From assembly GCA_964270895.1 (NCBI GenBank), contig OZ185441.1: 64,000 bases of DNA, one strand, 5' to 3'. This stretch comes from Podarcis filfolensis. Lineage: Eukaryota. Of this stretch, positions 5,718-58,383 are shown in pieces. A model generated the notes under the pieces. That model was given only the letters and a program-made list of their open reading frames with translations. It searched no databases and was not told the DNA's origin. Positions within the stretch are counted from its first letter, which is position 1. Every line of letters begins with the position of its first letter. A program made the translations under genes and the position numbers.

Positions 5718-5760
5718 TGTAGTTCTCCATCTGAGCCTCAGGGTGTCACTGTTGGCCAGT
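5718..5760 (+). promoter_or_regulatory. Pcdh promoter CSE / CTCF site of V2 (CACT core)
   Basis: tgtagttctccatctgagcctcagggtgtcactgttggccagt; core at 5747-5750, about 250 bp upstream of the ATG; homologous element precedes every complete exon. Confidence 0.85.
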
Positions 5761-5999
5761 GTGGCAGCCAGACTGATAAGAGAAAAGATCCACGCATGTG
5801 TTTCCTAAGGAGCAACTGTTTAATCATTGCAGCACATCACAAAGACAGAGCAATCCTGCTAGAAAGGAAAAGAAAATTCAACTACTTTCTATAAACATTA
5901 AGAAGAAAGGCAGCTTATTTTTCCTTATGGTGATCCTGCACCTTGATGGGGCTTTGATCTGATCTGCAAAAGGAAGCAGCTAATTTGTTGTAAAGCCAG

Positions 6000-8420
6000 A
6001 TGGACAGAAGACACGAAGACAATGGCAGAGCGTTCAGAAGGCAAGTACTGCTTCTCTTACTTTTGTCGCCTTCCTGCTGGGCTGCCTCAGAGCAGATTCG
6101 TTATTCTATCCCTGAGGAGATGGCAAAGGGTTCGATTGTGGGGAATCTGGCCAAGGATTTGGGACTGAATACAAGAGATCTTGCAAAGCGCAATCTGCAT
6201 GCTGTCTCTGTGAACAAAATGCAGTATTTCAGTATTAATGCAGAGAATGGAAACCTCTATGTAAGTGACAGAATAGATAGGGAGCAGCTATGTGACATAA
6301 CTCCCATTTGCGTAGTAAATTTTGAAGTGGTGGTTGAAAATCCCCTCAGTATCTTCCATTTAACTATAGCAATTCAGGACATTAATGATAATGCACCACT
6401 GTTTCCCAATGACAACATCAACTTGGAGACAAGTGAACTTACTGTACCAGGCGCACGATTTCTCCTTGGGAAAGCTGAAGATCCTGACATTGGGATGAAT
6501 TCCCTCCAGAATTACCAGTTGAGCACCAATCGGTACTTCACTTTGGAAGTTAGAGAAATGGAAGATGGAAGTAAAAATGCAGAACTGGTGTTGCAGAAAT
6601 CTTTGGATCGCGAAAGTGAGCACTCTCTTCACTTGATCCTTACAGCCTTGGATGGGGGGGAACCCAGAAAAACGGGGACTGCCCAGATATGGATTAATGT
6701 CACAGATGCCAATGACAACCCACCAGTTTTCACTCAAGAAGTGTACAAGGTCAGTGTGCATGAAGAAGCTCCTGTTGGGTCCTTTGTGCTCCAAGTTGTA
6801 GCCTCTGACAAAGATGATGGTTTAAACGCCCAGATCAGATATGAATTCAGCAACATTCCAGTGAATGGACAAAAGAAATTTGGCCTGGATCCAGTTGATG
6901 GCATAATCTCACTTCTGCAGATGTTGGATTTTGAGGAAACAAGAAGATATACTATGACAGCAGCAGCAAAGGATGGAGGTGGATTGGTGACACACTGCAA
7001 CATTGAAATAAATGTTCTTGATGGGAATGATAATGCCCCAGAAGTGACGTTAGCCTCCATATTCAGCCCTGTTCCTGAAGATTCGCTGCTGGGAACTGTC
7101 ATTGCTCTGATCAATGTAAATGACAAAGATAGTGGAGATAATGGAAAAGTTACTTGCTACTTACAAGATGATTTACCCTTCAAAATTCTTCCCTCATCTA
7201 ACAATTACTTCAAGCTCCAGACCGACAGTCCTTTGGATAGAGAAATAACTCCTGCATATAATATTACAATCACAGCCACTGATAGAGGAACTCCACCTCT
7301 TTCCACACACAAAACAATCTCACTACAGATCTCAGATATTAATGATAATGCCCCTGCTTTTCAGAGATCAACCTACAGCATCTATGTGCCAGAAAACAAT
7401 CCTTCAGGTGCCTCCATTTTCACCATCAAAGCCTCTGATCCCGATATGGACCAGAACTCACGGATCACATACTCCATCCTCAACAGCAACATCGAGGAGC
7501 TTCCCATCTCCTCCTATATCTCCATTAATTTTGAGACTGGCACCATCTATGCCCAGAGATCCTTTGACTATGAACAATTCAGAGAGTTCCGGCTGCAAGT
7601 GAAGGCCCAAGATGGGGGTTCTCCCCCTCTCAGCAGCAATGTGAGCGTCAGGGTGTTTGTTCTTGACAGGAATGATAACAGCCCTCGTATCCTGTCCCCC
7701 TCACAAGAAGCCAAGGGCTCAGCCTTGTTTGAGATGGTGCCTCGTTCGGCCGAGGCAGATTATCTTGTCACCAAGGTGGTGGCCGTGGATGCAGATTCTG
7801 GACACAACGCCTGGCTCTCCTACCACCTGACTCAGGCCACTGAGCCGGCACTCTTCACGGTTGGTTCTCATACTGGAGAGATCAGGACAGCCAGGGCCTT
7901 TGTGGAGAGAGACGCTGTGAAACAGAGACTGGTCATTATGGTGAAGGATAACGGGCAGCCGTCTCTCTCGGCCACCATGACTCTGAACCTGGTGTTTGCT
8001 GAGAACTTCCAGGAGGCCCTTCCAGAAATGAAGAGCCAACCCAGCAGCTCGGAGTATCAGTCTGACCTGCAGTTCTACTTGGTGCTGGCCTTAGCTGTCA
8101 TCTCCTTCTTGTTCCTCTTGACTGTGATTCTGGCCGTTACAATGAAGCTCCGTCATTCAGGGCATCCCAGGTTCCTACAGTGCTTTGGTCCTGTTCCCCA
8201 TTCCAAGAATGGTGCCATCTTCCCACCCAACTTTGAAGATGGGACTTTGCCCTATTCCTACCAGCTGTGTCTGTCTTCTGAGTCCAGGAAGAATGAGTTT
8301 ACCTTCCTGACACCAAATATACAGATTGCAGAGAATATTCTTAGCAGTGAGAAACCTGATGTGCCTTTTACAGGCAACAGTGGAAACAATTTTCATTCTG
8401 AAAAGGCTAAGGATGAAGAG
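6000..8420 (+). CDS. PCDHGB: Protocadherin gamma-B-like variable exon V2 (807 codons)
   Basis: Signal peptide, [10 protein letters not shown] start of EC1, EC1 Cx5C, six cadherin repeats, [18 protein letters not shown]. Donor GAG|GTAAGC at 8420/8421, phase 0. Confidence 0.95.
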
Positions 8421-8509
8421 GTAAGCTTTATGCTTAGGAAATATTTGTATTGTCCTTTTGATACCCTTCCCCACATTTTTTTAGCAGTTATGGAATAAGA
8501 GGAGATTGG

Positions 8510-9540: not shown

Positions 9541-11307
9541 ATCATGTGCTTCTAATTTATTCTATTTACAGAAGTTCTGTTAGCAAGTGAAGAGACTGTG
9601 GATTTGTCTCTATTTTTTGTCATAGCTATGTTTTGTGTAGATGTCAAGTTTCTGAGGCTAAGAGTTTGGGGCTGAATTCAGCCAAGGAGGTGTGCCAAAT
9701 GCAGGAGGTCTGAATGTGCACACACAGAAATGTTGAGGATGGGACTTGTGTGTGCACCTGCAAACACAAGCATGCACATATATCGTCCCAAACACCTGTG
9801 ATTTTGGTGAAGACTAAGAGCTGTTCCAAAATAGTTACTTTTGTGTTTAATCTTTCTTCCAGTGTAGAAGGAGCTGCATTATATTGCTCAGCTCTCTATC
9901 CTGAGAAAGCTTTTAAATGAAGGCCCCATTCACTGAACGAAGCAATATGTGCATGCACTGTAAAGGTTCTATTTCTGAGGAAGACACACACACTTGAACT
10001 ATGTCACCATATTGTTCAGAATTTCATCAAAAGAATACAATACTGATCTGGAAGTTCAGAAAATAAACACGGATCTTCTAGTCCTCCTCTGAATGTACCA
10101 ATTTACAATGCAAGGGATTAAAACATATATTGCATGCTTTCCTCTTCTACTCATAATAATGTGTTCACATCGGAGCCAAATCTTCTAGACTACATTTTCC
10201 TTCTCTCTACATCATGGGAAGAGTATAGTAAGTGATTTTACAGGACATGTAGGTAGCCATAGCAGTGCTAGATGATGCCTTGTCAAGTGCTGCTTTAGTA
10301 TTCCACAACGTAATCTAGCATTCCACTGTTTAGCATTCTAACCGTGATATTTTATTGATGTGACTCTTACCTTTGTACAATAGACCACATTTCAACCATG
10401 TAAAATTCAGAGGTTTTAATATCTCCACTTCTATAGATCTGTGACTCCTCCAGCCAGGCAAGCAGCAGTATCCTAGTTCAAGGACACATTGCAGCCAGCA
10501 AAAGCTCTTGAGGAGGGCATGGAAGAAGGCCAGTGAGGGGTTGAGGGGTGTGATCTGGGAAGGGAGGGAAGCCTACGGAAAGCCTGAGGGGTGGGGAGAG
10601 AGGACTCACGTTCCCAAGAAAAACTGTAGCATGATCTTGAGTGAGCATTGTACTTTTAGTGCTGTTCTCATTATATGACTGAGTTGCATAAGTTAAGTAA
10701 TGCCTTAAGAGAAGAAAAAGAACTTGCCAAACATTAGGAATTTCTCCAGGTATCCAGAATCACTCACATCACTGTCAACTAACACAGCTACATACATAAC
10801 TGATTAAGTGCATCAACTGGCAAATAGGTGAGGAGACGACTGCCAGCAAGACAGTTGGTACAATAGAAAGTAGAACTGTGGTACCTTAGAGGGGAAATTT
10901 TGTGTGACACAGAGATTCCAAAGGCCTTATTGCACATTTTGGGAAAATAACTTTTAAACTCAGAATTCATTAGGTCTGAGAACCACTTCCTGTGATTAAA
11001 TATTTTGACACATACCTATGTGGATGAACAGTTTCTAACTGTCAGAAAAATACGATTACACAACTGTACTATCAGACAGGGACACTAATCAGTCAGTTCA
11101 GTTTCTCTGAAGCGCACCCCCATGAGCAATGCCAAATGTGCTGCTACGAAAGTGAGTTGTTGCTTATCCTAATGTAAAACACAGAGACCAAACTCTAATT
11201 TTTTTACCATACCACAAAAGATTCTCTACCTGAGAATTATTGTACGTAAGATTAAAAATGGCAAGAAATCCCTTGTATGTTATTTACTTAAAAGAGAAGA
11301 GACATCT

Positions 11308-11350
11308 TGCAGTTCCCCATCTAAGACTCAGAGTGTCACTGTTGGCCAAT
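11308..11350 (+). promoter_or_regulatory. CSE / CTCF site of V3 (CACT core)
   Basis: tgcagttccccatctaagactcagagtgtcactgttggccaat; core 11337-11340; upstream TGCAG module and downstream CCAAT. Confidence 0.85.
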
Positions 11351-11606
11351 ATAGTTCTCATAGAGGAGTGTAGAATCCACTACCAGATGCTTTTGCAATT
11401 TGATTGCTCATGAACAAACTACAGAGCTGGGAAACAGCAGAACACAGGAACAAAACCACTGCAAAGTATAGAAATCCAGCAGCAGCAGCTACTGACTTCG
11501 TTCATGATTCTTTATTGAACACTTCTACAGAGTGAATGGAATTTAATACGCCTCAATTTAACTAATCACAGAAAGAAAGGATAAAGCACATTTCTCTGCA
11601 AGAGTG

Positions 11607-14021
11607 ATGGCCGGCAGACAGAAAGATAACAGCAGATCCCTAAGAAGGCAAGTACCTCTCCTCTTATTATTCTCTCTGTGTGGTCAGATTGCCTCAGAGC
11701 ACATTCATTATTCCATCCCTGAGGAAATGGAAAAGGGCTCCATTGTAGGAAACCTGGCCAAAGACCTGAGCCTGAATAATGGAGAAATAGGAAATTACAA
11801 TCTGCATATCCTTTCCCTAGGTAAAAAGCAATACTTTACTCTCAGTGCAGAAAATGGAAATCTGTATGTAAGGGAAAGGATTGATAGAGAAGAATTATGT
11901 GGTCAAACTGCAATCTGCTCCATCAATTTTGAAGTAGTGGTTGAGAGTCCTATGAATATTTTTCATGTAACTGTAGAGATTCAAGACATTAATGATCATG
12001 CACCACGTTTTGTAAATGGGGATATAAAACTGGAGATAATTGAATCCTCTTTACAAGGCACCACATTTCTCCTTGGACAAGCTGAAGATCCTGATCTTGG
12101 GGTGAATTCTCTCCAGGATTACAACCTTAGCACAAATCCATACTTTATTCTGGAAGTGAGAGAAATAGAAGGCGGAAATAAATATGCAGAATTAGTATTG
12201 AATAAACAGTTGGATCGGGAAAGTGAGAGCAGTTTCCAATTAATCCTTACGGCGCTGGATGGAGGGAAGCCTGCCAAAACTGGAACAGCCAAAATATGGA
12301 TCACCGTCATTGATGCAAATGACAACCCACCAGTCTTCACGCAAAAAGTATACACGGTCAAGCTGAAAGAAAATGCCCCCAAAGGGTCTTCAGTGGTCCA
12401 GGTGAAAGCCACAGATGGAGATGATGGTTCAAATGCCCAGATCAACTATAGTTTTAGTAACATCCCTGAAAGTGCTCGTCAGAAGTTCCACTTGGGTAAA
12501 CAAGATGGAACAATTATAGTTAAGGAGGTTCTGGACTTTGAGGAAACAGAAGGATATGTAATGGCAGTGGAAGCAAGAGATGGAGGTGGATTAGTTGCTC
12601 ACTGTAAAGTTCAAATAACACTCCTAGATGAGAATGACAATGCCCCAGAAGTGATTCTGGCCTCTTTATCCAGCCCCATCCCTGAAGACTCTGCAGTAGG
12701 AACCCTGGTAGCCCTTATCAATGTAAATGATAGAGACTCTGGAGACAATGGGAAGATTGCTTGTGACATACAACACACTTTGCCATTCAAAATGGTATCA
12801 GCCTCCAATAATTATTATAAGCTTCTCACAGATGCCCCCTTGGACAGAGAAAGAACTCCAGAGTACAATATCACAGTCACAGCCACAGACAAAGGCAACC
12901 CTCCTCTTTCCACATACAAAACCATCACACTGCAGATCTCAGACATCAATGACAACTGCCCTGCCTTTGAGAAACCCTATTATACTGCCTATGTCCCAGA
13001 GAACAACCCTTCAGGCTCCTCCATTTTCAGGGTCAAAGCCTCTGACCCAGATGTGGACCAGAATGCTCAAATCACCTACTCCATTCGCAACAGCATCACT
13101 GAGGGGCTGCCTCTCTCATCCTTCCTCTCCATTAATTCTGAGACTGGCACTATCTATGCTCAGCGCTCCTTTGACTATGAGCAAGTCAGGGAGTTTCAAG
13201 TGGAGGTGAGGGCCGAAGATGGAGGCTCCCCCCGCCTCAGCAGCAATGCCACCGTGAGAGTGTGTATTCTGGACCAGAATGACCAAAGCCCTCAGATTCT
13301 TTACCCTTCTCCAGGAGTAGAGGGCTCCTCCTTGTTTGAGATGGTGCCTCGCTCAGCAGAGGAAGGTTATCTGGTGACAAAGGTGGTGGCTGTGGATGCT
13401 GACTCTGGACACAACGCTTGGCTCTCCTACTATCTGCTCCAGGCAACAGAACCTGGGCTGTTCTCAATTGGTTCCCACACTGGGGAGATCAGGACCTCAC
13501 GGGCTTTTCTGGAAAGAGATGCTGTGAAGCAGAAGCTCATCATCTTAGTCAAGGATAATGGGCAGCCACCACTATCCGCTACCGTGAGTCTCAACCTGGT
13601 GTTTGCTGAGAACTTCCAGGAGGCACTTCCAGAAATTAGCCACCAGCCCAGTGACTCCGAGTATCAATCGGATCTACAGTTCTTCTTGGTGCTGGCCTTA
13701 GCTTTGATTTCATTCTTATTCCTCCTGACAGTGATTCTGGCCGTTCTCATGAAGATTCGGCGATCAGGGAACCCCAAATTCCTGCAGTGTTTTGCTCCTG
13801 TTCCCCATTCAAACAACACAGTCATTTTCCCACCAAACTATGAAGAAGGAACATTGCCATATTCCTATCAGCTATGTTTATCTTCTGAGTCCAGGGTACA
13901 GGAGTTCACCTTTCCAACACCCAATGTTCAAACCGCAGAGAATATTTCAAGCAACACTGATGCACCTTTGACTGCCAATGGAGGCAATATCTTGATTTCT
14001 GAGATGGAGAGAACTGATATG
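11607..14021 (+). CDS. PCDHGB: Protocadherin gamma-B-like variable exon V3 (805 codons), close paralog of V1
   Basis: First ATG is at 11607 (the ORF track begins at GTG 11604). Full domain set. Donor ATG|GTGAGT at 14021/14022, phase 0. Confidence 0.95.
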
Positions 14022-14244
14022 GTGAGTTTTAATCTGAGCAGTATCTACATTATACATTCTTGCTGCTTAGAGAATGGAAATTTTTATGAATCTTTGTTGC
14101 TGATTCCGTAATCTTTTTTTATACAACTAATATATTTTAATTTATTGTTTTTCAACCTACCTTTAACCAGCTAATTGGTTCAACTTGATTGAGTCTTTTT
14201 TCAAGTCTGATTGGTTCATAAACTGTTGGAATTGGTTCTTTTAA

Positions 14245-14248
<4 letters not shown>

Positions 14249-14286
<38 letters not shown>
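14249..14286. repeat. (TA)19 microsatellite
   Basis: Uninterrupted TA run read directly from the sequence. Confidence 0.95.
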
Positions 14287-14289
<3 letters not shown>

Positions 14290-15979
14290 TTCATTTTACT
14301 GGAAAATATCTATGTGTTTTCTGTTTTTGTGTGTTTATGAAAATGTGTTGAGTGGAGGAGACATTTTCCAGGAGAAATCAGGCCAAGGTGTTTTCCTGTA
14401 GTTCTTTGGGGCAAAATAAAATGAAAGGGGCTTTGGTAATCTTAAAATTATGAACATGTGGGGCCTTAGAATGAAATCGCTAATTGGATGTTATGAAAGA
14501 GAAAACATCTGATATATTTCTCCCATAGTATCAGTAATTTCCAGAGATTACTTCAAGTATTTAGAACATGTTCACATACATTATCTTAGTCTGTAGTCTG
14601 AAATGTATTTAGTTTTAAACATTTTTATCTGCCTTTCAATTGCAAGAGCAAGCCTGTCAAGTGTGGTCCCAAGTTTTGTCAGAGGCTGCAAGTCAGAGTT
14701 CTAAAGCTGCCTAGTAAATTTGTAACTGAAGAACTAGGAATCTCACAGCTCACACTTCAGCCCCTATATGAATTCTAGTGTATCTTAATTTGGATAGCCA
14801 TTGGCAAAACCAATTTGGAAAGGACAGGAAAGAATAATTTAAATTAAGAAAAATGTAAAAGTAAAGTAGGGCTACCAACACAAAGGTATATACATCCCAT
14901 GTCCAGAGAGAACACAATAGTGCAAAACTATTTGCTGTTTTGAAAAGCCTCTGCCTGGTTATTTTATTTATGATTGTTGGCTATGCCCTCAAAGCAGCTT
15001 GCAATTTAAAAGTCTAAAAATGCAAAAAAAGAGCCCTCAGTGAAATCATATGAATCAGTTCATTAAGATAACAGTAATACTGATAATGTTGTTGATGGTG
15101 ATGATGATATTACTTAAATAACGAAGTACAGCAAAAGCAGAACCACTGCCGTTTCACCTGTCCATAATGTTCTTAATAGCTTCTGATATCAGACAATAAC
15201 GTCCACATCCTATATGCAGTATCCACACATTACAAATGAACAAAATGAAAGTGAAAAAAATAGATGAATACATGGAACTTTGTCATATAAAATCTTGACT
15301 ATAGCTTACAGAAACTGAAAGAAACCAAAAACCTTCAATGAGGTACAACAGTATAATAATTCTCTTCTAAGCAATGGCTTCATTTCTTCCTGAAATTAGT
15401 TTGAGTCTTATACTTTTTGCAGTGGCTCCTCTCTTAGAACTGTGGATCCCAGAATAAAGGTGCAAGACACATAAATGGGATAAACTAAAGCCACAACATT
15501 GTTAGCGACTGATCTGTGTCTTCCATCCCTACTTAGTTGTCTTACTTTCTGTACCTCCAGTGAGGAGTTCTCTTCCACTTAGATGAGACTTTAAGAAACC
15601 ATCTCCTGCTGCCTCCCTTTGACCTGAAGAGCAAGAGTATAATATGTGTTCTTGGCTTTTTATTGCCCTTATATATTAATATTTTGTTGCTAGTGTCACC
15701 CACCTCCAGGCCAGACAGCAGGCTAGCACATGCAACCAGGCCTCAAGATACTCTCAGTCCCAGATCTCCTTTAATCAGTGACCCTTCAATGAATGTTTTG
15801 GGGAAACATCTTTTCACTAACTTGATTTCTCAGTGTGTTCACCAGCCTACTCTCTGCACTCTGCCCTGATCCTGCCTGTTCTACCACCTAGTTAGGACCT
15901 AAGTACCTTGACAAAGTCAGATTGTTAACTTGCCACTCCCAACTTGGCAGTAGATAAAAATTGCCCTGTCAGAGAGCCT

Positions 15980-15982
<3 letters not shown>

Positions 15983-16033
<51 letters not shown>
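15983..16033. repeat. (TAA)17 microsatellite
   Basis: Uninterrupted TAA run; it explains the poly-Leu stretch in the 15917-16225 minus-strand ORF. Confidence 0.95.
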
Positions 16034-16034
<1 letters not shown>

Positions 16035-16659
16035 CCTACATAGCCCCAGCAGGGACCGATCATGCCTGTAATATCTTCAGAAGAGTGGGAGAGCACAAGT
16101 GCTGCCAGCTGCACAGGGATTCCCTTCATTGGCTGGGATGAGACATCTTTGGAGTCCCTTTGGAGAATTCTTCTCCCTCGCTCATCAAGCCTTTCTCCTA
16201 AGGAAGGAGTGGGAAAGTTCTGCAAGAGATCTGTGGTTGGGCGGAAATTGTTTTTATTGTTTCGACATTATCATGGAAATATAGTAAACTCCCCAAGATA
16301 TATATTTTTTTAGTGGAAACAGGAGATTAAAAATATATATATAACCCGAGATGACAATGTTGAGACTGTTGAGATTCTGGCGCTCAGGATTGTAACTTTG
16401 ATAATATTATTTCCAAGATTCCAAGAAAAGAATCCTTTGTTACATTGCAAGCCATTTACCCAGGCAAATGGAAAGGTTTGAAGTGTTATTGATTCCAAAA
16501 CCAAAACAAAGATTCCCAAATATTCAGCTGAAGTCAAAATTCAATAGAAATAGCTCCTGTGTAAACTTCCAGTTGCATGTTTTCCCTACTGTATAAAACT
16601 ATAATTACGTTACATCCACGTTGCATTGTCTCTTAAACTGAAAGGTTGAAAACATCCCT

Positions 16660-16701
16660 TGCAGTTCTCCTGCTGAACCTCACAGTGCCGCTGTTGGCCA
16701 A
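16660..16701 (+). promoter_or_regulatory. CSE / CTCF site of V4 (CGCT core retained)
   Basis: tgcagttctcctgctgaacctcacagtgccgctgttggccaa; CGCT at 16689-16692. Confidence 0.88.
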
Positions 16702-16944
16702 TCTAGTAGCCATACAGTGATGGAAATACACTGATCCTTTCTACCGTGAGCTTACTTCTTTAGTGCTGTGCAGATCAGGGAACAGAGAGAAGGCATTGCT
16801 GCTGACATAAAGAAAATACAAAAATAATTTTTACAAATTAAAGAGAAACACAGTTTATTCTTTTTTATGGAGACTTAGTGCATACTGGTGAAAATTTGAT
16901 TTGGTTCTTAAAAAAAGGAAACAGCTGATTTTTCACAGAGCCAA

Positions 16945-19365
16945 ATGGAGAGAAGACACAACAAGAATGGCAGGGCATTCACAAGGCAAGTACAGCTTCT
17001 CTTAATATTCTTGCCCTCCTGCTGGGCTGCTTCAGAGCAGATTCATTATTCAATTCCTGAGGAAATGGCTAAGGGTTCAGTTGTGGGGAATATTGCCAAG
17101 GATTTGGGACTAAATGCCAAAGAACTAGGGAAACGCAACATGCATGCTGTCTCAGTGGATGAAATGAAATATTTCACTATGAATGCAGAGAATGGAAACC
17201 TCTATGTAAATGACAGGATAGACCGGGAGGGAATATGTGGCAAAAATCCACTTTGCTTTATTAATTTTGAGATGGTAATTGAAAGCCCCTTGAATATTTT
17301 CCACATAACAATAGCAATCCAGGACATTAATGATAATGCACCACAGTTTTTCAATGGAAAAATCAACTTGGAGACAAGTGAACTTACTGTACCAGGCACA
17401 CGATTTCTCCTTGGAGAAGCTGAAGATTCTGACATTGGGACAAATTCTCTTCAGAATTACCATCTCAGCCCCAATCCATATTTCAGCCTTGATCTTAAAG
17501 AGAGTCAGGAGGGAAATAAATTTGCAGACTTGGTGCTTCAGAAACCACTAGATCGGGAAAGTGAACAGACCATTCACTTGATCCTCACAGCCTTGGATGG
17601 TGGTGAACCTAGGAAGACTGGAACTGCCCAGATATGGATTAATGTCACAGATGCTAATGACAACCCACCTATCTTCACCCAAGAGGTTTACAAGGTCAGT
17701 CTGAAGGAAAATGCTCCTGTTGGCTCCCTTGTGCTCCAGATTTTAGCCTCTGATAAAGATGAAGGTACAAATGCCAAAATTAGTTACCACTTCAGCAACA
17801 TACAAAAAAGTGCTCAACGGAAATTCAACTTGCATTCTGGTAATGGCACAATCACTCTTACGAGCCCATTAGACTTTGAGGAAACCAGAGAATATACTAT
17901 GACAGTCGCAGCAAAAGATGGAGGTGGATTAGTAACATACTGTAAAGTAGAAATACAAGTTCTTGATGAGAATGACAATTACCCAGAGGTAACTCTGGTT
18001 TCCTTGTTTAGTCCAGTCCCAGAAGATTCTGTGTCTGGAACCTTAATTGCTCTGATCAATGTAAAAGACAAAGACACTGGTGAGAATGGAAAGGTTATCT
18101 GTTATTTGAAAAACGATCAGCCCTTCAAGATTGTCCCCTCATCTAACAATTACTTCAAACTCCAGACAGAAAGTCTCCTGGACAGAGAAATAGCTCCTGC
18201 ATATAATATTACAATCACAGCCACTGATAGAGGAACTCCACCTCTTTCCACACACAAAACAATCTCACTACGGATTTCGGATATCAATGATAATGCCCCT
18301 TCCTTTCAGAAATCTTCATATGTTATTTATGTGCCAGAAAACAATCCTTCAGGTGCCTCCATTTTCACCATCAAAGCTTCTGATCCCGATATGGATCAGA
18401 ACTCACGGATCACATACTCCATCCTCAACAGCAACATTGAGGAGCTTCCCATCTCCTCCTATATCTCCATTAATTCAGAGACTGGCACCATCTATGCCCA
18501 GAGATCCTTTGACTATGAACAATTCAGAGAGTTCCATCTGCAAGTGAAGGCCCAAGATGGGGGTTCTCCCCCTCTCAGCAGCAATGTGAGCGTCAGGGTG
18601 TTTGTTCTTGACAGGAATGATAACAGCCCTCGTATCCTGTCCCCCTCACAAGAAGCCAAGGGCTCAGCCTTGTTTGAGATGGTGCCTCGTTCGGCCGAGG
18701 CAGATTATCTTGTCACCAAGGTGGTGGCCGTGGATGCAGATTCTGGACACAACGCCTGGCTCTCCTACCACCTGACTCAGGCCACTGAGCCGGCACTCTT
18801 CACGGTTGGTTCTCATACTGGAGAGATCAGGACAGCCAGGGCCTTTGTGGAGAGAGACGCTGTGAAACAGAGACTGGTCATTATGGTGAAGGATAACGGG
18901 CAGCCGTGTCTCTCGGCCACCATGACTCTGAACCTGGTGTTTGCTGAGAACTTTCAGGAGGCCCTTCCGGAAATGAAGAGCCAACCCAGCAGCTCGGAGT
19001 ATCAGTCTGACCTGCAGTTCTACTTGGTGCTGGCCTTAGCTGTGATCTCCTTCTTGTTCCTCTTGACTGTGATTCTGGCCGTTACAATGAAGCTCCGTCA
19101 ATCAGGGCATCCCAGGTTCCTACAGTGCTTTGGTCCTGTTCCCCATTCCAAGAATGGTGCCATCTTCCCACCCAACTTTGAAGATGGGACTTTGCCCTAT
19201 TCCTACCAGCTGTGTCTGTCTTCTGAGTCCAGGAAGAATGAGTTTACCTTCCTGACACCCAATGTTCAGATGGTAGACAATATTGTTAGCAGTGAGAAAC
19301 CTAGTGTTCCTTTTACAGGCAATGAAGGAAACAATTTACATCCTGAGATGGAGAATATTGACAAG
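16945..19365 (+). CDS. PCDHGB: Protocadherin gamma-B-like variable exon V4 (807 codons)
   Basis: Full domain set; 3' half near-identical to V2/V7/V10. Donor AAG|GTAAAA at 19365/19366, phase 0. Confidence 0.94.
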
Positions 19366-23476: not shown

Positions 23477-23519
23477 TGAAGTTCTCCATCTCAGACTCAG
23501 AGTGTCGCTGTTGGCTAAT
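23477..23519 (+). promoter_or_regulatory. CSE / CTCF site of V5 (CGCT core retained)
   Basis: tgaagttctccatctcagactcagagtgtcgctgttggctaat; CGCT at 23506-23509. Confidence 0.88.
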
Positions 23520-23794
23520 GTGCTGCATCTCATGGTGCTGCATGGAATCTGCTAAGCGATGCTTCCTGCAGTGCCATTGTTCAGCCACAGACTGCAGAAC
23601 TGGGAGATAGTAGAACACAGGGACATTAAAACACTTTTGCTGAGGAAATAAAACACACTGCAACATATAGAAAGAGACAGTGACTGCTTTTATACCTCCT
23701 TATTGTGGATTTGTGGGACCTGATGGGAACTTGAGAATCTCCATCTAATGAAAATATGCAAGAAAAGAATAAAGCAATTGTCTCACCAAATCAG

Positions 23795-28501: not shown

Positions 28502-28534
<33 letters not shown>

Positions 28535-40715: not shown

Positions 40716-40757
40716 TGCAGTTCTCTGCTTCAGACTCACAGTGTCACTGTTGGACAA
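40716..40757 (+). promoter_or_regulatory. CSE / CTCF site of V8 (CACT core)
   Basis: tgcagttctctgcttcagactcacagtgtcactgttggacaa; core 40745-40748. Confidence 0.85.
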
Positions 40758-40993
40758 GGCGGCAATCGAAGGGCAGCTGAAGTTCCACTGATGCTTTCTG
40801 CAGAGAGATCTCTTTGTCCCAAACTGCACTTCGGGAATACCAGCAGACGCTGGAACAAACGTTTCAGCTGGAAAAAAGAAAACACTGCAGCATATACAAA
40901 TTAAACCAAAGGATCCAGTTCTTTTTTTACTGGGGAAAATCTCCTGTTTTCGTGGAAATCTGAAATCCTGTGCTCATCAAAGAGAAGAGGAAA

Positions 40994-43423: not shown

Positions 43424-43944
43424 GTAAGCTTTGCTTTCAGAAACAGCCTTACCTTATAGCAATAAAACTAATATTTTTATTTTGTTTTACTATATAAGGG
43501 GCCAGGAAAATTAAATTACAGTGTTAACAGCAGTTGTTCTGATTGTGAAGAACTTTCCCTACACATAGAAATGCTAGATGCAGCATAAATTCTGAGGCAT
43601 ACAATAATGTCAGAGTGAGTCTTCATCTCTGGAATTAAAGGAAATGTAGGCATGCATACAGCTTGAGTGTTCAATCTTCCTGTGGGGTATTATCCCTTAT
43701 CAATTAAAAATAAGGATTTGTACTTTTTCACTCACACAAAGCACAGTTTATTTGTCCTGTTATGATCAACTTAACTGAAGAATGCATAAAACATGAATGC
43801 TTCCTATTTATTTGTTGTATAATTTTGGGCGGTGTGTGGCTTCTCTGGAGGATTCATAAAAAGAAGTTGTGTGAAATACAGCAACCACAGAAAAAGGCAT
43901 CCCAAATGATCCATGGGTGCAACAACTTCTGTAGGGATACTTAG

Positions 43945-46826: not shown

Positions 46827-46868
46827 TGCAGTTCTCTGCTTCAGACTCACAGTGTCACTGTTGGACAA
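46827..46868 (+). promoter_or_regulatory. CSE / CTCF site of V9 (CACT core)
   Basis: tgcagttctctgcttcagactcacagtgtcactgttggacaa; core 46856-46859; identical to the V8 element. Confidence 0.85.
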
Positions 46869-47110
46869 GGCGGCAATCCAAGGGCAGCTGAAGTTCCACT
46901 GATGCTTTCTGCAGAGAGATCTCTTTGTCCCAAACTGCACATCGGGAAAACCAGCAGACGCTGCAACAAACGTTTCAGCTGGAAAACAAGAAAACACTGC
47001 AGCATATACAAATTAAGCCAAAGGATCCAGTTCTTTTTTTACTGGCCAAAAAAATATCTCCTGTCTTGGTGGAAATCTGAAATCCTGTGCTCATCAAAGA
47101 GAAGAGGAAA

Positions 47111-49540
47111 ATGAAGAGAAGAGGAATCCTTCATGGAGAGAGCTTTCAAACATCAGGAAGGCATATTACCCTTCTGATATTTTCATCTTTGTTCTGTGGA
47201 GCAGTTTTGGAAGAGGTTCACTATTCCATCCCTGAGGAGATGGCAAAGGGATCTTTGGTGGGAAATCTTGCCAAGGATCTAGGATTGAATGCCAGAGACC
47301 TGAAGAACAGAAACCTGCATATCCTTTCTGAAGGTAAAAAGCCATATTTCACTATCAATGCTGAAAATGGAAACCTATATGTGAATGAGAGGATAGATCG
47401 TGAGAGGATGTGTAGAGAGAGCACACACTGCATTATTGATTTTGAAGCTGTGGTCGAAAATCCATTGAATGTTTTCCATGTAACTCTAGCAATCCAAGAC
47501 ATTAATGATAATGCCCCACAATTCTTAGAAGCCAATATTAGACTTGAAATAATTGAATCCACATTGCTAGGTGCCAGATTTCATATTGGGAAAGCTGAAG
47601 ATCCTGATATTGGGATTAATTCTCTCCAAAATTATCAGTTAAGCCTAAATCAGTTCTTTATATTAGAAATTAAGCATAATCTGGATGGCCATAAATCTGC
47701 AGAATTGGTGCTGCAGAAACCTTTGGATCGGGAAAGCGAACACTCCCTTCAGTTGATCCTTACGGCCCTTGATGGAGGTGAACCCAGAAAAACTGGGACT
47801 GCCCAGATATGGATTAACATCACAGATGCCAATGACAACCCACCAGTTTTCACTCAAGAAGTTTATACAGTTAGCCTGAGGGAAAATTCCCCTGCGGGGT
47901 CCCCCATACTCCAAGTAAAAGCCTCTGATAGGGATGAAGGTTCAAATAGTCAGATCAGTTACACATTCAGTAAAGTCCCAGAAAAAGTCTATGAGAAATT
48001 TAGTCTAGATCCACAAAGTGGAATAATTATAATTAAGAAAGCTCTTGATTTTGAGGAAACAGAGAAATACACTATGACAGTTGAAGCAAAAGATGGAGGA
48101 GGTTTAGTGGCTCACTGTAATGTTGAAATAAAGATTCTAGATGAGAATGACAATGCTCCAGAGATCATCGTGGCCTCCTTATCCACCCCAGTATCAGAAA
48201 ACTCTGTTTCTGGAACAATAATTGCTCTCATCAATGTAAAGGATAGGGATTCTGGAGAAAATGGAAGAATTACATGCCATCTACAAAGTAATGTACCATT
48301 TAAAATAGCATCAATATCTAAGAACAACTACAAAATCCTTACAGACAGTCCTTTGGACAGAGAAAAAGCCTCAGGATACAACATCACAATCACGGCCACT
48401 GACAAAGGTAGCCCCCCTCTCTCCTCCAACAAAACCATCTCCCTGCAGATTTCAGACATCAATGACAACCCCCCTGCCTTTGAAAAATCAACCTACAGTG
48501 TCTTTGTACCAGAAAACAATCCCTCAGGTGCCTCCATTTTCTCCATCAAAGCCTTGGACCCAGATCTGGACCGCAACTCACGTATCACTTACTCCATCCT
48601 CAACAGCAACATGGAGGAGCTGCCTCTCTCCTCTTACGTCTCCATCAACTCTGAGACGGGAACTATCTATGCACAGCGCTCCTTTGACTATGAGCAATTC
48701 AGGGAGTTTCAGATCCAAGTGAAGGCCCAAGATGGCGGCTCTCCCTCTCTCAGCAACAACGCCACCGTGTGGGTGTACATTTTGGACCAGAATGATAACA
48801 GCCCCCGCGTTCTGTATCCTGTCCCGGGTGTTGAGGGCTCTGGTTTGTTTGAGATGGTTCCTCACTCGGCAGAGCCAGGCTACCTAGTGACCAAAGTGGT
48901 GGCTGTGGACGCGGACTCTGGGCACAATGCCTGGCTCTCCTACCAAGTGCTGCAGGCCACGGAGCCGGCCCTCTTCACCATTGGGACCCACACAGGAGAG
49001 ATCAGGACGTCACGAGCCCTTCTGGAGAAGGATGCTGTGAAACAGAAGCTGGTGATCTTGGTGAAGGACAATGGGAAGGCTCCGCTCTCAGCTACTGTGG
49101 TCCTCAACCTCGTGGTTGCTGAGAACTTCCAAGAGGCACTTCCAGAAATGACTAGGCAATCCAGTGACACAGAGCATCATTCAGACCTCCAGTTTTACTT
49201 GGTGCTGGCTTTGGCATTGATCTCATTTTTATTCCTCCTGACGGTGATACTGGTCATTGTCATGAAACTTCGACAATCAGGAAATCCCAAATTATTCCAA
49301 TGCTTTGAACCTAATGCTTTTTCTAAGGCGCAGGTCATATTTCCACCAAACTATGAAGAAGGAACTTTACCTTATTCCTACCAACTCTGCCTATCGTCAG
49401 AGATGAGGAAAGAGCAGATCTCTTTCCCGAAATCCCATATCCAGGTGGCAGAAAACTTGCTATGCAATGATAGCTCTCAGGTGGTTCTTGTGGATGGCAA
49501 CTGTGGGGATGCCAGTGCCAAAGAGGAGGTTGGTGAGCAG
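47111..49540 (+). CDS. PCDHGB: Protocadherin gamma-B-like variable exon V9 (810 codons)
   Basis: ATG at 47111. Full domain set. Donor CAG|GTAAGC at 49540/49541, phase 0. Confidence 0.95.
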
Positions 49541-50099
49541 GTAAGCTTTGCTTTCAGAAACAGCCTTACCTTATAGGAATACAACTCATATTTTTATTTC
49601 ATTTTACTATATAAAGGGGTCAGGAAAATGAAATTACAGTGTTAGCAACCGTTGTCCTGATTGTGAAGAACTTTCCCTACACATAGCTTTTAAGTTGCAA
49701 TGCTAGACGCAGCATAAATTCTGAGGTGTGCAATAATGGCAGAGTGAGTCTTCATCTCTGGAATTAAAGGAAATGTAAGCATGCATGCACGGAGTGTTCA
49801 ATCTTCCTGTGGGGTATTAGCGTGTCACCATAAATATATAGTTATTTATACATCCCTCATCAATTAAAAATAAGGATTTGTACTTTTTCACTCACACAAA
49901 GCACAGTTTATTTGTCCTGTTATGATCAACTTAACTGAAGAAAGCATAAAACATGAATGCTTCCTATTTATTTGTAGTATAATTTTGGGCTGTGTGTGGC
50001 TTCTCTGGAGGATTCATAAAAAGTTGTGTGAAATAACAGCAAGCACAGAAAAAGGCATCCCAAATGATTAATGGGTGCAACAACTTCTGTAGGGAAATT

Positions 50100-51831: not shown

Positions 51832-51903
51832 TATCATAATATGAAATCATGTGTAAAGTGCCAACAAACATTTTATCCTGTTGGATCATGCCTAGCTTGC
51901 GTC

Positions 51904-52070: not shown

Positions 52071-52809
52071 ACTGCTGGTAGAGCAACTACAGCCATTGGT
52101 CCTGCACTTGTGCTGTGTTCCTGCTTTGATCACAGGGAACAACTGCTAAGCAAGGACATTTGTGTGGCACCAGCAGGTAGGAGGCAGGTGGCAGAGTCTG
52201 ATGTAGAACCAATACCAGCGAACACACTTTTATCACCTAGTGCAGTCTAGACAGAAGCTACATGTGTTGCATCTTATCTTACCCTCAACAGACAGAGAGA
52301 GAACTCTTGGAATAGTAAGTTACTCTTGGAATTCCTACCCAACATTGAAAAGAACTTGTGCTCTGTTCCATAAATGTTGATAGACATCCAACAACATAGA
52401 AGAGATAAAAAAGAGAATAATTTCAGTAGGTTGTTTATATTAATTCTATTTAAGAAAAAAATACAATAGACTTACAGCTCTTGTGCTACTACAGCATAAC
52501 TATTATCGTAATACATTAATTTTAAGAAAATGTTTTAATATGTAACTGGATATTTATATATTAATGTTTACATATTTCCAATAAAAAAGAAGATGTGAAT
52601 AACCTTAATGTAATTGCAGTATTAGATACGACCCCAATTTTCACAGTACTGAAGAGCCACGGACATAAATGAGGTTAGCTGTACACTAAGAAAGAACACC
52701 AAGGAAAAGCCTTCTCAAATGCTCCACTCAGTGAGCAGAAAGGAAGGTATAGTATGTGCTGGAGAAATATCTGCATTTATTCACCTCTGTCTATTTTCAT
52801 AGAACAAAA

Positions 52810-52851
52810 TGCAGTTCCTTGAGTGGTCCTCTAAGTGTCAGTGTTGGCCAG
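52810..52851 (+). promoter_or_regulatory. CSE / CTCF site of V10 (divergent CAGT core)
   Basis: tgcagttccttgagtggtcctctaagtgtcagtgttggccag; core 52839-52842; the most degenerate of the ten. Confidence 0.75.
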
Positions 52852-53122
52852 TATGAGAGCCAGAGAGAGGATAGAGATCCAGTGATGCTTCCTGGACTGC
52901 AGTAACTCCCATCACTGTTGTTCAGATCAGACCAACTGAAGAGCACAGAGACAGGGAACTCTTGCAGAGAAGGAAAAATCTCTTTTGCTTTGCACACATA
53001 TGAGAACAAGGACAGTTTATTCTTCTTCAGTGATACCTCATGTTGTTTCCTTCATCACTGTGAGAGCTTGAGCATAGGAAACTGAGAAAAGGAAGCAGCC
53101 TGTTTTTGAGAGAACCAGCCAG

Positions 53123-55543
53123 ATGGAGAGAAGGCACCCAGGGAATGGCAGGGCGCTCACAAGGCAAGTACTGCTTCTCTCTCTATTGTCTTTTACCTGT
53201 TGGGCTGCATCAGAGCAGATTCATTATTCAACCCCTGAGGAGATGGCAAAGGGTTCCGTTGTGGGGAACCTCGCCAAGGACCTGGGACTGAGCACCAAAG
53301 AACTAAAACATCGCAATCTGCACACTGTGTCTGTGGCTAAAATGCAGCATTTCAGTATCAATGCAGAGAATGGAAACCTCTATGTAAATGACAGGATTGA
53401 TAGGGAGGGGATATGTGGCAAAAATCCAAATTGCTTTGTTAATTTTGAAGTTGTGGTGGAAAACCCTTTGAATATTTTTCATGTACTAGTGGAAATACAG
53501 GATGTTAATGATAATGCACCCCAATTCCTCAATGATAATATCAGCTTGCAGACAGGTGAGCAAACTTTGCCAGGCACTCGATTTCTCCTTGGGAAAGCAG
53601 AAGATCCTGACATTGGGATGAACTCTCTCCAGGATTACCAGCTGAGCTCCAATCAGTACTTCAGTTTGGAAATTAGAGAGAGAAAGGATGGAAATAAATA
53701 TGCAGAACTGGTGCTACAGAACCCTCTTGATCGAGAACGTGAACAAACCCTTCACTTGGTTCTTACCGCTATGGATGGGGGTGAGCCTAGGAAAACTGGG
53801 ACGGCCCAGATACAGATTAATGTCACAGATGCCAATGACAACCCACCTGTTTTCAGTCAAGAGGTATACAAGGTCAGTTTATCTGAAAATGTTCCTGTTG
53901 GGTCACTTGTGCTCCAGGTTGCAGCCTCTGATAAAGATGAAGGTTTATATGCCCAAATCGGGTATCATTTTAGCAACATACCAGCAACTGCCGAACTGAA
54001 ATTCAAGCTGGATCCCATCAGCGGCCAAATCACACTACTGGAGCAACTGGATTTTGAGGACAATGATGAATATACGATGACAGTTGCTGCAAAAGATGGA
54101 GGTGGGTTGATGACACATTCTAACATTGAGCTAAGGGTTCATGATGAGAATGATAATGCCCCGGATGTGACCTTAGCCTCCATGTTCAGCCCTGTTCCTG
54201 AAGATTCTCTGCCAGGGACAGTTATTGCTCTGATCAATGTAAATGACAGAGATAGTGGAGATAATGGGAAGGTCACTTGCTATTTACAGGATGATTTACC
54301 CTTCAAAATTCTTCCCTCATCTAACAATTACTTCAAGCTCCAGACAGACAGTCTCCTGGACAGAGAAATAGCTCCTGCATATAATATTACAATCACAGCC
54401 ACTGATAAAGGAACTCCACCTCTTTCCACACACAAAACAATCTCACTACAGATCTCAGATATCAATGATAATGCCCCTGCTTTTCAGAGATCAACCTACA
54501 GCATCTATGTGCCAGAAAACAATCCTTCAGGTGCCTCCATTTTCACCATCAAAGCCTCTGATTCCGATGTGGACCAGAACTCACGGATCACATACTCCAT
54601 CCTCAACAGCAACATTGAGGAGCTTCCCATCTCCTCCTATATCTCCATTAATTCAGAGACTGGCACCATCTATGCCCAGAGATCCTTTGACTATGAACAA
54701 TTCAGAGAGTTCCGGCTGCAAGTGAAGGCCCAAGATGGGGGTTCTCCCCCTCTCAGCAGCAATGTGAGCGTCAGGGTGTTTGTTCTTGACAGGAATGATA
54801 ACAGCCCTCGTATCCTGTCCCCCTCACAAGAAGCCAAGGGCTCAGCCTTGTTTGAGATGGTGCCTCGTTCGGCAGAGGCAGATTATCTTGTCACCAAGGT
54901 GGTGGCCGTGGATGCAGATTCTGGACACAACGCCTGGCTCTCCTACCACCTGACTCAGGCCACTGAGCCGGCACTCTTCACGGTTGGTTCTCATACTGGA
55001 GAGATCAGGACAGCCAGGGCCTTTGTGGAGAGAGACGCTGTGAAACAGAGACTGGTCATTATGGTGAAGGATAACGGGCAGCCGTCTCTCTCGGCCACCA
55101 TGACTCTGAACCTGGTGTTTGCTGAGAACTTTCAGGAGGCCCTTCCAGAAATGAAGAGCCAACCCAGCAGCTCGGAGTATCAGTCTGACCTGCAGTTCTA
55201 CTTGGTGCTGGCCTTAGCTGTGATCTCCTTCTTGTTCCTCTTGACTGTGATTCTGGCCGTTACAATGAAGCTCCGTCAGTCAGGGCATCCCAGGTTCCTA
55301 CAGTGCTTTGGTCCTGTTCCCCATTCCAAGAATGGTGCCATCTTCCCACCCAACTTTGAAGATGGGACTTTGCCCTATTCCTACCAGCTGTGCCTGTCTT
55401 CTGAGTCCAGGAAGAATGAGTTTACCTTCCTGACACCAAATATACAGATTGCAGAGAATATTCTTAGCAGTGAGAAACCTGCTGTGCCTTTTACAGGCAA
55501 TGTAGGAAACAATTTTGATTCTGCAGTAGATAATGGAGAACAG
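53123..55543 (+). CDS. PCDHGB: Protocadherin gamma-B-like variable exon V10 (807 codons; own EC1-EC3, V7-type EC4 to donor)
   Basis: Full domain set. Donor CAG|GTAAGG at 55543/55544, phase 0. Confidence 0.95.
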
Positions 55544-58341
55544 GTAAGGTTTGTTTTCTGAAATTAAATGCCATTATCCATCATTCTTTGCCATTAGTGA
55601 CATTGTCACAGTGCTTTTTATCCAGCTAATGTGACTGCCTTTTTGTTTTTCATCATATAAATGAATAGTTTGGCTCTTACATCATTTGGCTTTCATGAAT
55701 CAGGATGCGTCCTTTTCACTCCATGGGGAAGCTACACATCCATACGGAAGCTTCGAGCCATGCCCTTGAAACCATCTGGTAGAACTTATCTTGTTGTCAT
55801 TTGAACAACTAGTATTTTGAGGAGTTGACCTTCAACTACTTTCATTAACTTAAATAAAGTGAGGGAAAGAACTTTGTTTTTCACATTACTTGGCTTTCGG
55901 GGGCAGCAATTTTGGCTTTAGAATCAAAGGAGGGCACCTTGCTGTATAGCAGAAAATACTATCACTGTTATTAGTATTACTAGCAAAAAATTTTAAGCAA
56001 TAGATTTTAAAGACATACACTTTTGAGAGGTTTCTGTAAATTATGCTTTATTTCCTTCTCCATTTTACATTGCCTGTAAAATTAATAGGCATGTGTGTTC
56101 TTGCATGAGTGATGTAAAAAAACGTCAAGTCAAGACTGACTGATTGACTGGCCTTCTAGAGTAGATTGTGGATATTTCCAGCCCCCATATTCCTTTAAGT
56201 GAAACCACATTGCATTAAAGCTCTTTATAAACAACTGTCTGAAAGGCGGACAGATAATGTGGGATATTTTGTTAAAGACATGCATCGTGCATTTATTTAT
56301 TTTTAAAATTTATTTAAAACAAAAATGAAACAACTACATACAGCCAGAGAGTTATCTTCAAATACTCCACAGAGCTTTGCTAAAGTGTATATTCTAAAAT
56401 CATTTCAATCTTAACAAAAGCAAAATGGTACGTAATAACCTCCATCTCTTTGACTGTTGTCCACAACTACAAACATATATTGTATCAGCAGCAGTGCTGG
56501 TCTGCAGGAATTATACAAAGGCAAGGAGGAAGGAGGAAAAATAAAATAAAATATGTGCTTCATGCACACCAAACTGTCCTAGGCCAAGGCACATAGCTGT
56601 CAACGTTTCCCTTTTTTCAAGAGAAATTCCCTTATTCCAAATAGGATTCCTCGCAAGCAAAGGGGAAAGTTGACAGCTATGCCAAGGCACCGTTCTGCCA
56701 CAGGCCTCATTGTTTGTATAATCTATAAAGTCATCCAAGACTGCATAAAAGTTATCATATTTCCCCTGGCCTCTTGCTGTCTTCAATTTCCATGTCAGTT
56801 TTTTCAATAATGCTACCTGCCAGATTGCACTGCCTGCGTCATGTATGTCTGCCTCATGATTTAGACAATAATAATGATAGTTACCGTGTATATAATATTT
56901 ATATGTTTCAAAGGGCATTGCATATAATGGGTCAGATTCAGAATTAGTTATCCTTGGACCAAGTTAGTCAAGCAAGACTAATTTAAGTCAATTTTATTTA
57001 AGTCGGGCTACTTTAAGTATGATGAAGTCTGGATTTGACACATTATCTTATAATTCTTATATAAGTGAGTTCCTGTCAGAGGCAAAATTCATACCATGAA
57101 ATTCCTGGTTCACAGTTTTGTTCTTTACATGAGACCAGCTCAATATACATGAAGCATGTTGAATTCTTGAACTGCTCTACCAACATGTTAGCTATGCTGC
57201 TTACATGACATGAATGCATGAATCGATGGATAACTGTATTTCTGATCATAGTATTGTGGGATATCTTAGCACGTACTTGAGTTACGTAAGCATGCAATGA
57301 ACCACCCCCTCCAACTCCCTGCTGGGCTCATGGCCAGTAGGGCAGATGTGAGGATGGAGGAGTGTTCTTGCCAGGGTTGGTGCTAGCTGTTGGAAGGAAT
57401 TAGGGGACAGGACCATGACTGACAATTGCAGTGTGCTCAGCTACCACGTAAACATAGAAAAAGAAGTTTAAAAATGGAGGGGAAAGCTCAGAACATTTGA
57501 GGTCCAGCATATAACACCCAGGGCTTATTTATGTAGTTTTGTTCCTTGATTAAATGAAGTTGCATTAATAGCTGGAGACAATATGTAGCTTCCTAAAATA
57601 CTGAAAGGACTGTAGAGATTTCTGAGTAGCTTTCTGGTTGTCCTGTCCCACCCCAACTCCCCGCCGGCAAAATAGGGGTCTCCATATTGTTTGCATATGT
57701 AGAGGGGATGACCCATATCTGTGATATTGTGAAGTAGCTGGGGTGTTGTGTAAGGTCAAAAGCACACACCACAAAGTAAATGAAATCAGCAAAGTGTCTA
57801 TTGTAACTGGACAAAAGGGCAGGTGGGGGAAATGGCAAAGGTAAATAATGACAAAGTACATCTGTTGAAGGAGAAAGCTATACAAACAGACCAGAAATCG
57901 TGTGGGCATAAGGTGACAGAATAGGACTTGAGATGTGGCACTATTTTCAGTGAAATTATGTAAGGATAAACACAATTTTCAGACACGTCCTTAGGCTTCC
58001 CACACACAGTTTAAGATGCCTGTAAATACCTAATACAATATTTTTCTAATTTATTTAAAAGTCTTTTATTATAAACAACAATATCATTCCCATACTGCAG
58101 TCTGCTATTCTGATTTTTTCTAAAGAAATAGTGGAAATAGTGCTATAAATTCATCACTGCTTTTTCTTTGCTGTAAATATTAATTTGAAGCTGATTCCTT
58201 TTAACCTATTGTAATGGTGAACAGATAACACTTTCCAACAGGCATATTCAAATAACCTGTATGAGAATATGGTCTGAGTCATTACTTAAAAATGACTATG
58301 TAATGTAATGAATTAGGGAAGAAAAATCACTGGGAAAAGAT

Positions 58342-58383
58342 TGCAGTTCTCGGCTTCAGACTCACAGTGTCACTGTTGGACAA
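58342..58383 (+). promoter_or_regulatory. CSE / CTCF site of V11 (CACT core)
   Basis: tgcagttctcggcttcagactcacagtgtcactgttggacaa; core 58371-58374. Confidence 0.85.

Follow-up and report, generated by a model that had tools for sequence, protein, structure and literature searches.

The promoter element of a protocadherin gamma array in Podarcis filfolensis is retained in a CpG-poor locus, mostly without its core CpG

In the mammalian model of neuronal self-identity, each neuron picks its protocadherin promoters randomly, and whether CTCF can bind is decided by methylation, both of the conserved sequence element (CSE) of these promoters and of the CpG island around it. The CSE is described as a forward CTCF site with a CGCT box that is highly conserved in all but four mammalian promoters, and CpG methylation in this box precludes CTCF binding by interfering with zinc finger 3 (review PMC7811963). 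CTCF binding has been reported in vitro for a gamma-a2 promoter probe and in vivo for each human Pcdh gene promoter (PMC3333863). Loss of the CGCT box has been reported in alpha promoters of Xenopus and zebrafish, with weaker conservation in Xenopus gamma promoters (PMC4978886), and the paper on the anole cluster contains nothing on the CSE, promoters or CpG. In the present work, statements on the mammalian CSE rest on reviews and on a tree-shrew locus. We analyzed a window of 64,000 nucleotides (nt) of the lizard Podarcis filfolensis (NCBI GenBank assembly GCA_964270895.1, contig OZ185441.1), by which we mean the whole stretch of DNA, and found in it a protocadherin gamma array in which a CSE precedes all ten complete variable exons, seven times without the CpG of the CGCT box.

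The window contains 11 tandem open reading frames (ORFs) on the + strand of about 810-835 amino acids each, named V1 to V11, the first of which is cut by the start of the window. These tandem single-exon ORFs of about 800 amino acids place the locus among clustered protocadherin gamma variable-exon arrays, which are recognized by six cadherin repeats, a transmembrane segment and a short tail. The best matches of V2 are gamma-B5-like protocadherins, with 97% identity to a Podarcis raffonei protein, followed in the match list by hundreds of squamate gamma-B-like proteins, and its domains are Cadherin_2, Cadherin and Cadherin_C_2.

An alignment of the ten upstream regions revealed a single strongly conserved block. 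The pattern GTG[CT]C[AG][CG]TGTT was found once ahead of every complete variable exon, ten in all, 249-284 nt 5' of the first ATG, with starts at 5743, 11333, 16685, 23502, 29542, 34828, 40741, 46852, 52835 and 58367. The extended pattern TGCAGTTCY-N16-GTGYCRSTGTT, with up to 2 mismatches allowed, gave 10 matches, all on the + strand and one per promoter, and 0 in 100 shuffles; the spacing from TGCAGTTCY to GTGYC is exactly 16 nt in 10/10 window promoters, and likewise in tree-shrew gamma-B. A CSE, understood as a conserved element of about 22 nt lying about 200 nt before each ATG, was thus found in 10/10 promoters, and the CGCT box is absent from 7/10 (6 CACT, 1 CAGT) with the remaining element intact. 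The pattern search returned exactly the core states that a first-pass annotation had read from the letters (CGCT in V4, V5 and V6; CACT in V2, V3, V7, V8, V9 and V11; CAGT in V10), and the start coordinate of that annotation, 5718, is the first base of the first extended-pattern match. The elements, located by alignment and pattern search, are the following:

5718 to 5753, + strand: V2 element, with upstream part TGTAGTTCT, 16-nt spacer and core GTGTCACTGTT; CACT at 5747-5750
11308 to 11343, + strand: V3 element, CACT at 11337-11340; the P. raffonei ortholog also has CACT
16660 to 16695, + strand: V4 element, CGCT at 16689-16692
23477 to 23512, + strand: V5 element, CGCT at 23506-23509
29517 to 29552, + strand: V6 (putative gamma-A type) element, CGCT at 29546-29549
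34803 to 34838, + strand: V7 element, CACT at 34832-34835; 0 CpG within 100 nt on each side
40716 to 40751, + strand: V8 element, CACT at 40745-40748; the Lacerta ortholog has CGCT
46827 to 46862, + strand: V9 element, CACT at 46856-46859; recent copy of V8
52810 to 52845, + strand: V10 element, CAGT at 52839-52842; 0 CpG from the element to the ATG; the Lacerta ortholog has CAGT
58342 to 58377, + strand: V11 element, CACT at 58371-58374; recent copy of V8/V9

The ratio of observed to expected CpG (o/e) is 0.21 in the ten promoters, 0.20 in intergenic DNA, 0.25 in the variable exons and 0.22 in the whole window, and the ten promoters together hold 30 CpGs against 26.2 expected from the intergenic density. 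Outside the core, the CGCT promoters carry 3, 1 and 4 CpGs (mean 2.67), and the promoters with CACT or CAGT (CA promoters) carry 1, 2, 1, 6, 4, 0 and 5 (mean 2.71). Since promoters, intergenic DNA and exons have similar o/e values and the non-core CpGs are equal, the CpG poverty of the promoters is the background of the locus, CGCT promoters included, and the core dinucleotide is the sole difference between the two groups. The first-pass annotation had called most gamma-B promoters nearly CpG-free. Its counts were exact (1 in 5701-5999, 2 in 11281-11606, 1 in 34801-35108 and 0 in 52801-53122), and the description suits V2, V3, V7 and V10 (0-2 CpGs) and not V8, V9 and V11 (4-6); no single promoter is significantly below the intergenic expectation, the lowest P being 0.06 for V10 with 0 CpG. 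In V7 and V10, 0 CpG lie within 100 nt on either side of the element, and the first 500 nt of each exon contain 1-9 CpGs. With a CpG island defined by o/e >0.6, G+C >0.5 and a length of at least 200 nt, no island values were obtained at any of the ten promoters or exons. Island-like 200-nt windows numbered 19/3190 here versus 198/1666 in the tree shrew and 106/1154 in the turtle, and those ranked highest here belong to an insert near 39000 that resembles a short interspersed nuclear element (SINE).

No CpG-rich spot other than this insert, at 39012-39390, was found in the window; its o/e is about 0.9 and its G+C 0.54. The SINE-like sequence spans about 350 nt, contains a box B of tRNA type (GGTTCGAATCC) and is flanked by direct repeats ACTCTAAGTATGA; an Rfam scan of 37500-41000 gave no match. 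The insertion is probably young, and its CpGs would for this reason still be undecayed.

To place the locus among amniotes, ten squamate loci outside the window were used (from Podarcis raffonei, Lacerta agilis, Rhineura, Tiliqua, Eublepharis, Gekko japonicus, Candoia, Protobothrops and Phrynosoma), with the turtle Trachemys, the pigeon Columba and the tree shrew Tupaia as outgroups. The loci were the genomic surroundings of single-exon relatives, ORFs crossing runs of N were excluded, and the element finder was run with the four core positions neutralized. The ten squamate loci have a locus CpG o/e of 0.12-0.30, with promoters and exons at background. In Trachemys the o/e is 0.52 for the locus, 0.71 for promoters and 0.65 for exons, and every clear element has CGCT; in Tupaia it is 0.49, 0.67 and 0.62, respectively, and every clear element again has CGCT, often with extra CpGs. 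The pigeon locus has an o/e of 0.65, with exons up to 1.15, and its single clear element has CGCT. By parsimony, the CpG-rich state would be ancestral for amniotes and would have been lost on the squamate stem, or, as tuatara lies outside the sample, possibly earlier on the lepidosaur stem. The real contrast is that between squamates and turtle, bird and mammal, not that between CGCT and CACT inside the array.

A survey of squamate cores, which the first-pass annotation had proposed, gave a mixed picture: 32 promoters, the ten of the window counted, comprise 15 CGCT, 13 CACT, 3 CAGT and 1 TGCT. The G/A core position departs from the majority in 50% of these 32 sites, and the other positions of GTGYC-CTGTT do so in 0-9%, except for the Y position with 34%. 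The core state changes between close relatives. V8, V9 and V11 share CACT and their Lacerta relative has CGCT; the three are near-identical recent copies, and their CACT is therefore one event. V3 and its P. raffonei ortholog have CACT, and the closest paralog, which in P. raffonei lies two genes upstream of the start of the window, has CGCT. In the tree, a Eublepharis CACT is paired with a Gekko CGCT, and one snake subclade contains CGCT, CACT and TGCT. CAGT is common to V10 and its Lacerta ortholog. With CGCT taken as ancestral, as in the turtle, we count about 7 independent CG>CA changes against 1 CG>TG change (one-sided binomial P = 0.035); CG>CA is the signature of deamination, as the first-pass annotation had noted. 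In the alignment of the V8, V9 and V11 promoters with that of Lacerta, the flanks have diverged freely around a footprint that extends from TTGCAGTTCT to CTGTTGG and in which only G>A and two other changes separate the two sides. This pattern suggests that the element is under purifying selection with only the G/A position free, and that the flips between close relatives represent drift between equivalent states, not two maintained classes.

Some promoters of the survey deviate further. The only TGCT core was seen in a promoter of the pit viper Protobothrops (position 9743 of the fetched locus; GTGCTGCTGTTGCCC), and two Phrynosoma promoters (positions 9655 and 25660 of the fetched locus) have CACT and a one-base insertion after CTGTT (CACTGTTAAGCCAG); these promoters are candidates for weakened or altered sites. 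The P. raffonei ortholog of the truncated V1 (position 9727 of the fetched locus) has a CAGT core in a more degraded element (GGATGTCAGTGTCAGCCAG); CAGT may have originated here a second time, or both this promoter and V10 may have it from an older origin.

The relation of the element to CTCF was studied with an approximate matrix of 19 positions (maximum 26). In one register, consistent between lizard and tree shrew, C-G-C-T falls on matrix positions 15-18, which are C12-R13-S14-Y15 of the 15-nt core; this placement is consistent with the effect of CGCT-box methylation on zinc finger 3 described in the review (PMC7811963). In this register, G>A costs about 0.45 bit, C>G at S about 0.65 bit and C>T at C12 about 3.4 bits, an order that fits the observed spectrum of many CACT, some CAGT and almost no TGCT. 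With ACTCAGA as its 5' half, the core departs from CCASYAG there. The core score alone proves nothing, and the upstream half is more telling: a CTGCAGTTCC-like upstream motif is bound by CTCF zinc fingers 9-11 at 2-7 nt from the core (PMC12885311), and TGCAGTTCY matches this motif, with a gap of 6 nt to the TGG-like triplet before the core in 10/10 promoters. TGCAGTTCY is probably part of the "specific sequence element" of Golan-Mashiach et al. that adjoins the CSE. According to in vitro and structural work, the strand opposite CTCF position 13 accepts T, 5-methylcytosine or C, with Ser364 of zinc finger 4 accepting a T there just as it accepts 5-methylcytosine, and methylation of C12 is without effect on CTCF binding (PMC10484683). 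CACT would thus be an allowed CTCF variant, in agreement with the earlier statement that CA fits the CTCF consensus, and the upstream-motif match and the pattern of substitutions are indirect evidence that CTCF would bind the lizard element.

Strong matches to the canonical CTCF core number just three in the 64 kb, at 20801 (-), 21004 (+) and 51758 (+), with scores of 11-14 of 26 in the approximate matrix; all are intergenic, none lies at a promoter, and two of them lie as a divergent pair some 2.8 kb 5' of V5. Reading the element in a reverse-strand CTCF register (TGGCCAACAG...) was rejected, since positions 11 and 13-16 then disagree with the motif and promoter CSEs are described in the literature as forward sites. 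ZNF143 was rejected as binder of the upstream motif on the basis of a preprint that found CSEs to lack a ZNF143 motif and saw no direct binding.

Transcription was examined by placing RNA reads and contigs on 11250-17249, which covers the V3 promoter and exon, an intergenic stretch and the start of V4. A stranded raw RNA-seq data set of a closely related organism gave 12 reads, all inside the V3 exon and with a first mate that maps to the - strand, as is the case for sense transcripts in most stranded libraries; a second raw RNA run (X24) yielded one read. In two studies, contigs lie on the V3 exon and on the 5' end of V4, with nothing in 14050-16649. The runs behind the contigs are labelled RNA by guess, although the coverage pattern rules out whole-genome DNA. 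From the V3 reads and the exon-limited contigs it follows that V3, with its CACT core, is transcribed and that its transcription is no less visible than that of V4, which has CGCT. The isoforms are intact, as the first-pass annotation had stated, and their promoter element is conserved.

Our preferred explanation, to which we assign a probability of roughly 60%, is that a methylated CpG decays where CTCF accepts A or G, so that CACT, CAGT and CGCT would be equivalent variants of one promoter type. Each variable exon would have a two-part CTCF-type site, composed of TGCAGTTCY, 16 nt and the core GTGYC(G/A)CTGTT, the CSE. The squamate gamma array, devoid of island character in the ten species sampled, would be germline-methylated like bulk DNA, and its CpGs would decay at the usual high rate. 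The CpG of the CSE would lie on CTCF core positions 12-13, and since both G and A are allowed at position 13, antisense-strand deamination (CG>CA) would be tolerated and repeatedly fixed; sense-strand deamination (CG>TG) would abolish the near-invariant C12 and rarely be kept. Promoters with CACT, CAGT and CGCT would then be functionally equivalent, still under purifying selection and still transcribed. Several points weigh against this explanation. The 7:1 asymmetry is marginal in significance, and gene conversion among paralogs could reduce the number of independent events. Outside the window, just 1-4 promoters per species were sampled. The RNA evidence is thin, 12 raw reads being too shallow for a transcription start site or a comparison of levels. 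Finally, the elements score weakly, from -4.5 to +7.4 of 26 in the approximate matrix, as do the tree-shrew gamma promoters.

The first-pass annotation had proposed a largely methylation-independent choice of the isoforms and, with it, two regulatory classes of promoter in one array. If selected, such classes would consist of CGCT promoters gated by CpG methylation and of CACT/CAGT promoters chosen independently of it, and we consider this improbable. The core CpG is present in 3 promoters and absent from 7, CAGT is conserved between V10 and its Lacerta ortholog, and methylation of the CGCT CpG is reported to block CTCF in mammals (PMC7811963); however, methylation of C12 had no effect on CTCF binding in vitro and structurally (PMC10484683), the CGCT promoters hold 1-4 other CpGs, the same as the CA promoters, CpG-island character is lacking in all ten promoters and exons, close paralogs and orthologs differ in core state, and one of the three CGCT promoters belongs to a gamma-A exon, of a different subfamily. 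The part of the proposal that stands concerns the core itself: with no CpG there, the CSE cores of 7/10 promoters are out of reach of CpG methylation, which can hardly act anywhere in the V7 and V10 promoters. Nor did CACT appear as a common core of mammalian gamma-B promoters, which would have told against a special mechanism in the lizard; the reviews describe CGCT as kept in mammals.

Promoter choice could also depend on another mark, such as CpG methylation of the 5' exon, neuronal CAC methylation, histone marks or antisense transcription, or the CA promoters could be constitutively bound by CTCF with the choice made at the enhancer or cohesin step. CAC is the preferred context of neuronal non-CpG methylation, and a CACT core sets C12 in this context; each exon keeps 1-9 CpGs in its first 500 nt, and in mammals the expression of alpha isoforms correlates with first-exon methylation (cited in PMC3333863). 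The sequence nevertheless points to no particular alternative mark, and exon CpG o/e is at background, which leaves this explanation unlikely, if worth keeping in mind. That the lizard element is not a CTCF site at all but is bound by another factor, in which case the CpG loss would be uninformative on CTCF and methylation gating, appears equally hard to sustain as the two classes: the weak canonical core scores and a core 5' half unlike CCASYAG would fit it, but the tree-shrew gamma promoters share the weak core and the layout, CTCF is reported bound to the gamma-a2 probe in vitro and to each human Pcdh promoter in vivo (PMC3333863), the upstream motif matches the motif of CTCF zinc fingers 9-11 at an allowed spacing, and the tolerated changes follow the CTCF consensus (R at 13, S at 14, C12 kept).

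The variable exons were classified with a tree of 32 variable exons from a quick IQ-TREE run. Nine exons of the window fall in a gamma-B clade rooted by a turtle exon, and V6 falls in a separate clade with tree-shrew, gecko and Lacerta exons (support 100); the V6 protein is 65% identical to Zootoca gamma-A6 versus 49% to gamma-B5-like. V6 thus appears to be of gamma-A type, interleaved among gamma-B exons as in mammals, and the earlier assignment of all promoters to gamma-B holds for the other nine. The exon ORFs are listed below; the end given for V2 is the first stop, which lies beyond the unmapped splice donor.

6000 to 8498, + strand: V2 variable exon ORF, gamma-B type (ORF list, protein matches)
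11607 to 14111, + strand: V3 variable exon ORF, gamma-B type (ORF list; RNA reads and contigs on the exon)
16945 to 19449, + strand: V4 variable exon ORF, gamma-B type (ORF list; contigs at the 5' end)
23756 to 26263, + strand: V5 variable exon ORF, gamma-B type (ORF list, tree)
29829 to 32282, + strand: V6 variable exon ORF, putative gamma-A type (ORF list, tree, protein identity)
35109 to 37547, + strand: V7 variable exon ORF, gamma-B type (ORF list, tree)
40994 to 43459, + strand: V8 variable exon ORF, gamma-B type (ORF list, tree)
47111 to 49576, + strand: V9 variable exon ORF, gamma-B type (ORF list, tree)
53123 to 55561, + strand: V10 variable exon ORF, gamma-B type (ORF list, tree)
58622 to 61087, + strand: V11 variable exon ORF, gamma-B type (ORF list, tree)

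The promoter element of V6 (TTAGGACTCTGGGTGTCGCTGTTTACCAA) is closer to tree-shrew gamma-A elements than to its gamma-B neighbours in the window, and CGCT is kept in 5/5 gamma-A-like promoters sampled. A single, very recent triplication gave rise to V8, V9 and V11, whose promoters and 5' ends are near-identical (40560-43459, 46670-49576 and 58185-61087). The unrelated V10 lies between V9 and V11, and this layout suggests unequal crossing-over or duplication of a two-gene unit.

Our findings make squamates a natural test of the need for CpG methylation in stochastic promoter choice, as the island is gone at every sampled locus and roughly half of the promoters have lost the CpG of the CSE. Despite this loss, the element and the genes persist, as does at least one transcript, and CpG loss with the element kept agrees with the in vitro data in which methylation at position 12 does not block CTCF. 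It is possible, though we hold this only tentatively, that squamates gave up CpG-methylation gating of gamma promoter choice, the islands having been lost after the split from turtles and archosaurs and about half of the CTCF-type cores being left without CpG, with an isoform repertoire that is retained and expressed. In that case, lizards and snakes would make their stochastic choice independently of methylation or via non-CpG methylation, and within the mammalian model DNA methylation would be one dispensable layer, not the core. Choice in squamates may still be based on methylation, through exon CpGs, the few promoter CpGs or non-CpG sites, or it may not be so at all; the significance would be smaller if lizard promoters were controlled through the few remaining CpGs. 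A literature search, with most subscription journals outside its scope, returned no description of a squamate-wide loss of islands in the gamma array, of recurrent CG>CA or of its polarity.

Compared with Xenopus and zebrafish, the lizard is likewise a non-mammalian vertebrate in which the CSE is kept and CGCT is lost, but those reports concern alpha clusters and a general weakening, and not recurrent CG>CA, its polarity or a clade-wide loss of islands. Other CTCF sites with A at position 13 resemble the CA promoters in having an R at this position within the consensus and no CpG at C12; they differ in that the lizard array has both states, with G in some of its paralogous promoters and A in others. 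The closest counterpart is the mammalian CSE. Both elements are forward-pointing and precede each variable exon, about 250 nt from its ATG; the spacing between the upstream TGCAGTTCC motif and the core GTGYCRCTGTTGGCCAA is equal in the lizard element and in tree-shrew gamma-B (TGCAGTTCC-N16 layout). In mammals, promoters and exons are CpG-rich (tree-shrew o/e 0.6-0.8) and the array is the textbook case of methylation-gated CTCF binding, whereas in the lizard neither the ten promoters nor the exons are island-like and 7/10 cores are without CpG.

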